This document shows, piece by piece, positions 13,199-50,768 of a DNA stretch of 64,000 bases (the stretch's first letter is position 1; every line of letters starts with the position of its first letter). Location of the stretch: sequence record MZ444140.1, one strand, 5' to 3'. The position numbers and the translations under genes are program-made. A model generated the notes under the pieces. That model was not told the origin of the DNA. It was given only the letters and a program-made list of their open reading frames with translations, and did no database searches.

Positions 13199-14800
13199 AT
13201 GGCTACTGCTGACTTCGATAATGAGTACGATGATACTCCAGAAGAGAATTTACTAGATCAAATTGATGAGATCAATGCGCAACACGATCCTGACTCTAGT
13301 ATTGAAAATAATGACGAGGTGGAAACTCCACCTTTCGTTCCTGATCAAAAAGAAATTAAACTACGTATTCCACGTAATGCTAAGACTGGAAATATCCGGG
13401 ATGCTTCTGAACCGGCTATTAAAGATAGTGCTAGCATTCTTACTTTACTACGTGAGAATCCCCAGACTGTTTATAATTTCCTGGATCACAATAAAGAACT
13501 ATTTAAAGCATTTGCTGATAATAAAGTAGATGACACTAGTGACGGTGTAAAGTGGACAGCTGCTATTCTGGAAGGCTTAGCTCACTCTATTGTTGAAGAT
13601 GCACCAATCGGTGCAACTGCCCGAGAAGGTTCTGAATGGTCTAGTGAAATTCCTTATGGTGAAAAGATCATTCGACCTGGCCGACCTGTATTTAATACCA
13701 ATGGTCGTAAAATGACCGATGATGAAACTCTAGTTTTCCTAACACGTAAAGCTAACATCGGTACGCCATATGATACTTTCCTACCTCATTCAGGTATTTG
13801 GGTAAAACTACGTGCACCTACTGGTACTGAAGTAGCTGCCCTACAAGCACGTCTAGCACAATTAAAGATCCGGCTAGGCGCTGAATCAAAAGGTATGCTG
13901 TTCTCAAACATGGCAGCTGTGTTACTTAACATGGTTAGTAGTTTAGCACTTGCATGTGTTATTCAATCCAACTATAAGTTCAACACCCCAACTGATCTAG
14001 AGCATGTTATCTCAGTAGCTGATGAGCCGTTCTTGCATCACGCACTAGCGGCGACTATGTATCCAGATGGATTTAATTATAGTTATCCATGCATTGCAGA
14101 TGCCAATACATGTAACCATATTGAAACAGCGAAACTTAATATGTCAACGCTTGTTCAATATGATCTACTGGCATTCTCAGAAGAACAAAAGAAATATATT
14201 GCACGTAAGTTTAATGCATGTACTGAATCTGATCTTAAGACTTATAAAGAAGGATTCCGTATTGAAACTCAAGTAACTGAAATGTTTGGTGACGTTGGTG
14301 TTGTTCTTGAGATGTGTACAATTGCTGATCGCCGAGAGTCTGGTGATAGTTGGATTAACTCAATTATCGATATGACTCAAGGTAGTTTTAATGAACCAGT
14401 CGATGGTCCGCAACGTTCTCAGTATATTGCACGTTTACAAAAGATCTCTATTGCCCGTCAGTTCTCACATTTTGTTAAAGAAATTAAAGTACGTGAAGAT
14501 GACGATGGTGAAAGTTCTGAAGACAATATTCGTACTGCAACCACTAATCGTGAAACTATTGAAAAGTTCTTAACTAATATTCTATCCACACCGGAATATA
14601 ATGACCGCTTTATTAATGCGGTGAGTAACTTCATTGATTCACAACTAATTGGAATGATTGCAATTACAAGTTGGAATTGTCCAGTATGTGAGTCACCTGC
14701 TGCTACTAAATTTAAAGAACGTTTCCCACACTTAATCCCTATTGACATGCTGTCAACTTTTTTTACTTTGGCGGCCTCGAAGTCAAACCGGATGGTGTAG
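13199..14800 (+). CDS. Putative tail/baseplate assembly chaperone (gp77-like; T4 gp26/G-type)
   Basis: 533 aa, acidic disordered N-terminus, Cys pairs YPC...TCNH and WNCPVCE near the C-terminus as in gp26-like chaperones. Function is inferred. Confidence 0.55.
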   Translation: MATADFDNEYDDTPEENLLDQIDEINAQHDPDSSIENNDEVETPPFVPDQKEIKLRIPRNAKTGNIRDASEPAIKDSASILTLLRENPQTVYNFLDHNKELFKAFADNKVDDTSDGVKWTAAILEGLAHSIVEDAPIGATAREGSEWSSEIPYGEKIIRPGRPVFNTNGRKMTDDETLVFLTRKANIGTPYDTFLPHSGIWVKLRAPTGTEVAALQARLAQLKIRLGAESKGMLFSNMAAVLLNMVSSLALACVIQSNYKFNTPTDLEHVISVADEPFLHHALAATMYPDGFNYSYPCIADANTCNHIETAKLNMSTLVQYDLLAFSEEQKKYIARKFNACTESDLKTYKEGFRIETQVTEMFGDVGVVLEMCTIADRRESGDSWINSIIDMTQGSFNEPVDGPQRSQYIARLQKISIARQFSHFVKEIKVREDDDGESSEDNIRTATTNRETIEKFLTNILSTPEYNDRFINAVSNFIDSQLIGMIAITSWNCPVCESPAATKFKERFPHLIPIDMLSTFFTLAASKSNRMV

Positions 14801-14832
14801 TTAATGATCTGAGATATAGTCGTCTTGAGGCC
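14758..14832 (+). promoter_or_regulatory. Candidate -1 programmed ribosomal frameshift signal
   Basis: T TTT TTT heptamer at 14758-14764 in phase with the gp77-like frame; 8-bp stem (14773-14780 with 14825-14832) starts 8 nt downstream; the -1 frame is open to 15261. Confidence 0.6.
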
Positions 14833-15261
14833 ACTTTCAAGGAAGATAGTGGTCACATCCTACATCCAAACTTTGGTTATGATAAGTTAACTGAAGATGA
14901 TACACACTTAGATAGACTATTATCGACAGTAGGGGCAGTAAGACCGTCTACAGCAGCACGTTTAACAAGAGAAGCATATCTACTTGATTACGATATCGGT
15001 TCACCAGAAAACGGACCCATGTGGTTAAATAAGGTAAATCCTAAAGAGGACTTTATCGAAGGTGGGTTGAGAAGGAGACTGACTAGAGATTTCTTCAAGT
15101 ATAAAGTAGGTAGCTTATCTAATATGTCATTAACTGAATTCTTTGAATTAGCTTATTCTGAGGTAGAATACATAATTGAATTATGTAGAAATATTACCCA
15201 TAATGAAGCTGTTAATAACAATAACCAGTTAAATGAATTAAACAAGCCGTTAACTAAATAA
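14764..15261 (+). CDS. -1 frame extension of the gp77-like protein (gp76-like; T4 gp51/T-type segment)
   Basis: Frame is open from 14746 to 15261 with no ATG/GTG/TTG before 15019; C-terminal SLTEFFELAYSEVEYIIEL resembles the T/gp51 helix motif. Confidence 0.6.
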   Translation, partial: YFGGLEVKPDGVVNDLRYSRLEATFKEDSGHILHPNFGYDKLTEDDTHLDRLLSTVGAVRPSTAARLTREAYLLDYDIGSPENGPMWLNKVNPKEDFIEGGLRRRLTRDFFKYKVGSLSNMSLTEFFELAYSEVEYIIELCRNITHNEAVNNNNQLNELNKPLTK

Positions 15262-15272
15262 AAAAAATAAAG

Positions 15273-15306
15273 ACAGGCCCCTCTCCATGTGGAGAGGGGT
15301 TTATGT
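15273..15306. terminator. Bidirectional palindrome, TATG family
   Basis: acaggcccctctccatgtggagaggggtttatgt with A-tract on the left. Confidence 0.75.
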
Positions 15307-49940: not shown

Positions 49941-50750
<810 letters not shown>

Positions 50751-50768
50751 AAAAAAATAAAAAAAAGA

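Follow-up and report, generated by a model that had tools for sequence, protein, structure and literature searches.

We examined a stretch of 64,000 nucleotides from sequence record MZ444140.1 (hereafter the window) and, within it, a 2,063-base locus that holds the orthologue of phiKZ gene PHIKZ077, whose product we call gp77, together with an open -1 reading frame that overlaps the 3' end of this gene. The window is from a phiKZ-type Pseudomonas phage. The 2,063 bases are 100% identical to phage PA7 (MZ444140) and 99-100% identical in 47 sequenced phiKZ-like Pseudomonas phages. In phiKZ the equivalent unit is PHIKZ077 followed by PHIKZ076.4, a short annotated gene that covers only the last part of the -1 frame (Table 1). 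We use the term extension for the part of the -1 frame that runs from a T-run in gp77 to the -1 stop. From the analyses described below, we consider it likely that a single recoded gene comprises gp77 and the region annotated as gp76.4, with a -1 slip at a U-run making products of 533 and ~687 amino acids.

A T-run near the end of gp77 opens onto a start-less -1 frame

Near its 3' end the 0 frame of gp77 reads ACT TTT TTT ACT, with an in-phase run of seven T residues (T7) at 14758-14764. This run is followed by 11 sense codons and then, as the 12th codon, by a TAG stop at 14798-14800. The -1 frame contains no stop from 14746 to 15261, and its first ATG, GTG or TTG is found at 15019, leaving 91 open codons without a start. 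If the 0-frame part through the second Phe codon is joined to the ~165 codons of the -1 frame, the predicted product has ~687 amino acids. A first-pass annotation of the window, made from its letters and open reading frames, had listed this reading frame, the in-phase T7 run, the stop at the 12th codon, the 91 start-less codons and the two product sizes, and we find all of them in the sequence.

Among the T7 and A7 runs that lie within long open frames of the window, only the one at 14758-14764 is followed by a long -1 frame. Only 0.05% of the in-gene codon positions in the window have a -1 frame that stays open for 165 codons or more, and the window-wide maximum (171 codons) is the length of the -1 frame at the gp77 locus. 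The combination of run and long -1 frame is beyond chance in this window.

The same arrangement could also stem from a homopolymer sequencing error, or from a recent pseudogenising mutation, in a single gene of 687 codons, and homopolymers are classic sites of sequencing and replication errors. We found that the 47 phiKZ-like genomes, which were sequenced independently, agree in run length, and that each contains the full 0-frame product and the full -1 piece at 99.3-100% identity, with a single frame kept straight through the run in both pieces. Because 47 independent genomes match both frames through the run, sequencing error is excluded.

T7 and A7 homopolymers are depleted in the window (overlapping matches: observed = 19; expected from dinucleotide shuffles = 35.6), and all 100 dinucleotide shuffles had at least 19 matches. 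This depletion is consistent with selection against accidental slippage. Outside the long open frames, the - strand carries adjacent T9 and T8 runs, one base apart, at 50749-50766.

Run and -1 frame are retained in 40 divergent loci

For comparison we fetched the annotated loci of 10 Pseudomonas-phage relatives and of 8 distant relatives (on Xanthomonas, Ralstonia, Serratia, Erwinia, Bacillus, Klebsiella and Salmonella hosts), and added 32 loci from IMG/VR plus one metagenomic contig. Removal of duplicates left 40 distinct loci with 20-54% protein identity to the gp77 of the window; phage RVTF4 was kept apart as an exception.

All 40 loci carry a run of five to eight T residues (T5-T8) on the same nearly invariant Phe-Phe pair. 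In 21 of the 40 the run is T7 or T8 with an in-phase T_TTT_TTN, where the Phe codon choice of each gene and its third-position T frequency predict 1.26 such loci; to judge by this codon choice, the T-run is selected at the nucleotide level. The codon 5' of the run varies (ACT, CTT, GTT or GGT, encoding Thr, Leu, Val or Gly) and ends in T in all 21 loci with T7 or longer. In the gene of Xoo-sp14, TTT is used at 0 of the 14 other Phe codons, yet the slip site reads CTT TTT TTC. Every one of the 40 loci encodes the conserved downstream domain in the -1 frame, which is free of stops from before the run and for a further 152-180 codons past it; the +1 frame closes after a median of 13 codons.

These comparisons bear on the central proposal of the first-pass annotation, a programmed -1 shift at the U-run giving a short and an extended product. 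They support it strongly, as the run, the frame, the start-less extension and its length are kept in all 40 relatives. The first-pass annotation had suggested a look at whether orthologues conserve the T7 run; T5-T8 is found throughout, with T7 or longer in 21 loci. The proposal would have been set aside had relatives shown an independent start for the downstream frame and no slippery site; what we observed is a run in every locus and first start codons that are scattered.

Nucleotide conservation is strong just 3' of the run, which dual coding explains: phages of the Pseudomonas group have T-L-A-G-Q-K/R in the 0 frame here and Y-x-G-G-P-E-S in the -1 frame. Each of the two C-termini is conserved. 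All 24 sequences compared share L524 of the 0-frame tail, and distant matches by tblastn extend as far as residue 528-533. Because the 0-frame tail and the extension are both conserved, both C-termini look functional, and as far as sequence conservation can indicate, the pair looks like the pattern expected if short and long products are both needed.

The same data address decay of a single 687-codon gene. The frames are split in all 40 divergent relatives. We found no gp77-fused form among 38 extension homologues in 1.84 billion representative proteins, and no extended form among the gp77 homologues searched. The conservation of the 0-frame tail also speaks against decay. The one frame break within the extension of RVTF4 fits with decay. 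In our view the distribution data refute an artefact or recent mutation, and we give this explanation practically no credence.

RVTF4 (L014, PQ015378) has both the run and the -1 frame, and is the sole relative with a discontinuous extension: past the break, the domain goes on in a different frame, and this remainder has been annotated as a small open reading frame of its own. The break must be a true lesion or else an error of sequencing.

We also considered an upstream in-phase T_TTC_CCG/A site, present at an ERFPH motif in some relatives, and rejected it. It cannot be the shared slip site because in the window a -1 stop separates it from the extension.

The extension is a conserved domain that lacks a conserved start

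Alignment of 38 -1-frame pieces, each taken from run to stop, revealed a shared domain. Of the five columns best conserved in this alignment, three (F38, Y73 and I79) precede the first start codon available in the window's -1 frame, and the 72 start-less residues encoded by 14803-15018 match the -1 frames of PA1C (E = 3e-14) and Phabio (E = 9e-12). Matches by tblastn to distant Pseudomonas phages start at residues 1-6 of the -1 piece, that is, at the run, and phrog_12109 matches residues 32-169. Across the loci, the first ATG, GTG or TTG in the extension frame is scattered between 90 nt 5' and 262 nt 3' of the run; in 19 of 39 loci no start codon is reached until after F38, a column that hardly varies. 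Likewise, the N-termini that gene callers assigned to extension homologues map anywhere from query position 5 to 89. These alignments show the extension to be a real protein domain that is conserved without a conserved start. PHIKZ076.4 is the C-terminal piece of this domain, not a complete gene on its own.

Public records annotate two genes at this locus, and the extension might be translated alone, from a non-canonical start or by re-initiation at the gp77 stop, with no fusion protein made. Several relatives have an ATG, TTG or GTG within ~25 codons of the run, and an overlap such as that of a TTG with the gp77 stop in 201phi2-1 would also yield a -1 relation. Published Grad-seq profiles of extension peptides and gp77 differ as well (see below). 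Two separate genes would leave the nucleotide conservation of the T-run unexplained, and the 91 start-less codons of the window, with well conserved columns ahead of the first start, argue against them, as does the lack of a conserved start position. Furthermore, anything from 27 to 135 nt separates the run from the gp77 stop, depending on the locus, yet the frame relation is -1 throughout and the frame is open through the run; re-initiation requires neither. We consider independent translation of two genes quite improbable as the explanation of this locus.

The extension has no Pfam or NCBIfam family, no named PHROG and no PDB sequence match. Its structural model is helical over residues 100-166, with a predicted local distance difference test score (pLDDT) above 90, and is confident only over the last ~65 residues because the called homologues are N-terminally truncated. 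A fold search with this model against BFVD returned only the extension's own uncharacterised orthologues and, as far as tail assembly chaperones go, a chance-level hit (E = 3.7). The resemblance of the extension to T/gp51 segments, suggested in the first-pass annotation, thus finds no support in these searches.

Fold matches of 686-687 amino acids, from phiEaH2 and ctLnO19, were considered as natural fusions of the two frames and rejected. They are most simply N-terminally longer orthologues: in phrog_8054, window residues 139-501 align to profile positions 291-652 of 693, and ctLnO19 carries a separate extension homologue of 171 amino acids.

In public annotations the downstream open reading frame is given arbitrary starts in different phages, with lengths of 74-155 amino acids. 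In some records, including those of Wadjak 2 and ANB1, it is unannotated or small opposite-strand open reading frames are called in its place. A family-wide re-annotation of this reading frame is needed.

A -1 slip on the U-run as the proposed mechanism

We propose that most ribosomes would read the 0 frame to the stop at 14800 and produce the 533-residue gp77, while a minority would slip back one base with tRNA-Phe on the U-run and read the -1 frame on to 15261, producing a protein of ~687 amino acids. The long product would consist of nearly all of gp77 and an extension of ~165 residues, of which the last 80 would be the annotated PHIKZ076.4. U_UUU_UUU is a shift-prone heptamer known in E. 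coli (PMC5009743), and the U-run alone would suffice for the slip, without a conserved downstream RNA structure. Both products would be kept by selection, with no lineage in which the frames have become fused. The long form would make up perhaps a few percent of the short one.

In phages, a downstream stimulatory structure at a spacing of 5-9 nt is common, although not universal. The first-pass annotation had assigned this role to an 8-bp stem that pairs GGCCTCGA (14773-80) with TTGAGGCC (14825-32). The stem does exist, begins 8 nt after the run and is part of the minimum-energy fold, but we reject it as a stimulator. The window segment folds at -20.9 kcal/mol (z = -0.55), no better than its shuffles, of which 55 of 200 fold at least as well, and RNAalifold on an alignment of 23 relatives found no conserved structure after the run. 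A search of Rfam gave no family at the stem, and only chance-level small RNA (sRNA) matches, over the terminator described below.

The same two proteins would result if a phage RNA polymerase stuttered on the T-run and made mRNAs of altered length that put the extension in frame. The phage's own polymerase, and not the ribosome, may in that case determine how much of each form is made. phiKZ-like phages transcribe with their own multisubunit non-virion and virion RNA polymerases (nvRNAP/vRNAP). Points in favour of such stuttering are the signal itself, which consists of nothing but T residues (T7 or T8 in 21 of 40 loci), the want of an RNA structure conserved after it and, possibly, the unusual nature of these enzymes; that polymerase slippage on U/A runs can have this outcome is well established (PMC5009743). 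Against it, two loci with T5 only (L045 and L047; GAG TTT TTC) keep the start-less conserved extension, with the first start at residue 70 and 54, respectively, and the T_TTT_TTN phase, which matters to ribosomes and not to polymerases, is kept in all 21 loci with T7 or longer. Runs as short as T5 are poor stuttering substrates for bacterial and phage polymerases, and on them tRNA-Phe can still re-pair one base back. Because T5/T6 lineages keep the extension and the phase of longer runs is constant, we favour the ribosome over polymerase stuttering and infer that the shift is ribosomal; transcriptional slippage we regard as unlikely.

Several points weigh against the recoded-gene proposal. Of all loci compared, 19 of 40 have T5 or T6 only (for example, A_TTT_TTC or G_TTT_TTT). 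These contexts are not the canonical X_XXY_YYZ, so a slip by a single tRNA is needed there and, given that these lineages keep the start-less extension, must suffice. With no conserved stimulatory structure after the run, the efficiency of the shift may be low. The IMG/VR loci were retrieved with a peptide pattern, built from a 14-sequence alignment, that includes the FF site (it fixes FF, not the codon choice), and the comparison of 21 loci with an expectation of 1.26 overstates significance because the loci are not phylogenetically independent. Start codons near the beginning of the conserved domain (in Psa21, an ATG 54 nt after the run; in 201phi2-1, the TTG noted above) mean that independent initiation could contribute in some relatives. 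Lastly, we infer the fusion product itself.

Extension peptides in infected cells

Published Grad-seq proteomics of phiKZ-infected cells recorded peptides of PHIKZ076.4 at an abundance below that of PHIKZ077 (log10 abundance: PHIKZ076.4 = 9.08; PHIKZ077 = 10.7; PMC10914614, Supplementary Table 1), from which we calculate that the former amount to ~1/40 of gp77. These tables assign the peptides to the annotated 80-residue PHIKZ076.4 only, and they show that the C-terminal part of the extension is translated in infected cells.

The PHIKZ076.4 peptides peak in gradient fractions 4-6, which are the fractions of the phage RNA polymerase complexes (PMC10914614). A free 9-kDa protein would be expected to behave otherwise, and the peptides do not peak at the top of the gradient. 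The profile of gp77 peaks in fractions 3-5, with 39% of the protein in the pellet as against 5% of the extension peptides (PMC10914614), and this difference speaks for separate translation of the extension. The sedimentation shows that the end of the -1 frame travels in something large, and is no proof of fusion. The -1 shift proposed in the first-pass annotation is consistent with these published data.

gp77 and its possible role

Using tblastn, we found gp77 in 226 phage records, from phiKZ-like jumbo phages with hosts ranging from Pseudomonas to Bacillus. Among the orthologues an FF-x-L motif is conserved at the C-terminus, and two Cys pairs, C298/C305 and C494/C497, hardly vary, which is suggestive of a structural zinc site. 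We found no Pfam or NCBIfam family, no named PHROG and no PDB sequence match for gp77. Its AlphaFold model (pLDDT = 78; predicted template modelling score, pTM = 0.80) has no fold match in the PDB and, on the strength of this model, gp77 may have a new fold.

In BFVD, Foldseek with the gp77 model finds the orthologues and, in addition, proteins of 253-284 amino acids named 'Baseplate hub assembly protein, bacteriophage T4-like' or 'hub assembly chaperone' (E = 1.5e-4 to 2.5e-3; target-normalised template modelling (TM) score = 0.52-0.59), a weak resemblance at the level of the fold. By name and size these proteins correspond to T4 gp51, which is listed as a hub assembly chaperone, and two public records annotate gp77 orthologues as baseplate hub assembly protein. 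Profile comparison by hhalign gave a probability of 18% over 18 columns for gp77 against a T4 gp51 alignment, the matched columns being the CxxC knuckle only, and 14% over 19 columns for the gp77 profile against T4 gp26. The first-pass annotation had described the Cys pairs as gp26-like; the pairs are indeed conserved, and the likeness to gp26 is not borne out.

The orthologue in phage Churi is listed as non-structural and is present 15 min after infection, and gp136 of 201phi2-1 lacks a virion mass-spectrometry note, unlike its neighbour gp138. From these annotations gp77 appears to be non-structural.

Comparison with known recoded genes

The frameshift anatomy proposed here resembles that of lambda G/GT and P2 E/E'. 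In each, a -1 slip (for gp77 a proposed one) near the 3' end of a gene for a non-virion protein, as gp77 appears to be, yields a majority short product and a minority product extended at its C-terminus, with a shared N-terminal part and with both forms retained by selection. The ratio of G to GT in lambda is ~30:1 (PMC5009743), compared with extension peptides at ~1/40 of gp77 here. The two systems differ in other respects. The gp77 unit is not placed between tube and tape-measure genes and instead lies among genes for a head protein, a helicase and RNA polymerase; its short form has 533 amino acids rather than roughly 100-150, making it 4-5 times larger than G-type chaperones; and its slip site is a U-run rather than the G_GGA_AAG of lambda. 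Searches of Pfam and PHROG and with Foldseek brought up no tail assembly chaperone akin to gp77 in sequence or fold. By position, size and similarity, the gp77 unit fails as a member of the G/GT family. Of the G/GT-like chaperone pair put forward in the first-pass annotation, the frameshift anatomy stands, and the chaperone role is a hypothesis.

The tau/gamma pair of E. coli dnaX offers a second comparison, as there too a homopolymer-type heptamer in a long gene gives two functional products from one mRNA. The dnaX shift leads to near-immediate termination and a shorter product, whereas the gp77 shift would add a whole domain. The dnaX site is flanked by stimulators, an upstream Shine-Dalgarno-like element and a downstream hairpin; no structure is conserved at the gp77 site. 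T4 gp51 shares CxxC motifs with gp77, and both would be non-virion assembly factors, in the case of gp77 by analogy. Compared with gp51, gp77 is twice as long and has no link to it in Pfam, PHROG or NCBIfam, and T4 gene 51 adjoins the hub genes 27-29 and has no annotated frameshift.

Because the hub-assembly fold hits are weak and unconfirmed by profile comparison, we treat the chaperone pair as a hypothesis, an analogy with one weak structural lead rather than a family membership. Our guess, drawn from tail assembly chaperone pairs, is that gp77 could be a non-virion assembly or scaffolding factor to which the extension would add a second binding surface. The more specific proposition, in which gp77 and its extended form serve nucleus-forming jumbo phages as a chaperone pair for baseplate-hub or tail assembly and are distant relatives of T4 gp51, seems to us doubtful. 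If it were true, the rule of a conserved frameshift in tail assembly chaperones would reach a lineage and a protein architecture in which it was never recognised, and the extension would be an adaptor that recruits a structural partner. Should the link to T4 hub assembly hold, it would provide a testable lead to tail building in these giant phages.

Significance of the proposed recoding site

Literature searches found no description of a gp77 frameshift, the hits to 'gp77' being other phages' numbering, and no record among those examined annotates one. This agrees with the earlier impression that such a frameshift had not been described in nucleus-forming phages. The recoding site is of a standard kind and, as an instance, appears to be new.

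If the proposed recoding is correct, a gene conserved in all the phage records found above makes two proteins, one of them with an extra conserved domain, and the annotation needs correcting in every public genome examined. The fusion product would be missing from the protein databases used for spectra searches, and knock-outs of the 'small open reading frame' would truncate the long form. A U-run site that is deeply conserved, structure-free and tolerant of T5-T8 informs the question of which signal bacterial ribosomes or phage polymerases need. The conservation spans the whole of the nucleus-forming phage family, which is intensively studied.

Surroundings of the gp77 unit

PHIKZ078 lies 5' of PHIKZ077 in the same orientation, and gp78, gp77 and the extension make up one co-oriented unit (Table 1). 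The unit is flanked on the opposite strand by gp79 (a head protein) on one side and by small open reading frames and the gp75 helicase on the other. RNA polymerase genes are also annotated nearby, and no tail or tape-measure gene adjoins the unit; the first-pass annotation was right to call it isolated from such genes. In most of the annotated relatives fetched, gp78 is likewise found 5' of the gp77 orthologue. The gp78 orthologue had no match in Pfam, NCBIfam or PDB sequences.

Table 1. Features of the gp77 unit and their positions in the window
Feature	Position	Strand	Remarks
PHIKZ078 orthologue, 164 amino acids	12693..13187	+	From the list of open reading frames; phrog_14050, function unknown; first gene of the unit
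PHIKZ077 orthologue (0-frame product), 533 amino acids	13199..14800	+	From the list of open reading frames; phrog_4585, E = 7e-196
Candidate slip site, T7 run	14758..14764	+	In phase as T_TTT_TTT on the conserved Phe521-Phe522 codons
-1 reading frame	14746..15261	+	Part from run to stop is the extension (~165 residues); overlaps the 0-frame tail at 14746-14800
Annotated PHIKZ076.4, 80 amino acids	15019..15261	+	C-terminal part of the extension; annotated in phiKZ and PA7
8-bp stem of the first-pass annotation	14773..14832	+	In the minimum-energy fold; not supported as a stimulator
G+C-rich hairpin, T tails on both strands	15278..15299	none	Between the convergent extension and PHIKZ076.3

A GGAG motif is located 8 nt 5' of the gp77 ATG. 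The 15 nt upstream of the start codon at 15019 contain no GGAG, GAGG or AGGA. From the gp77 stop to the end of the extension we found no terminator-like site on the + strand. Just beyond the extension is a strong hairpin with a G+C-rich stem of 9 bp and a T-rich tail on either strand, which is probably a bidirectional intrinsic terminator that ends the transcription unit, in a phage with its own RNA polymerases.

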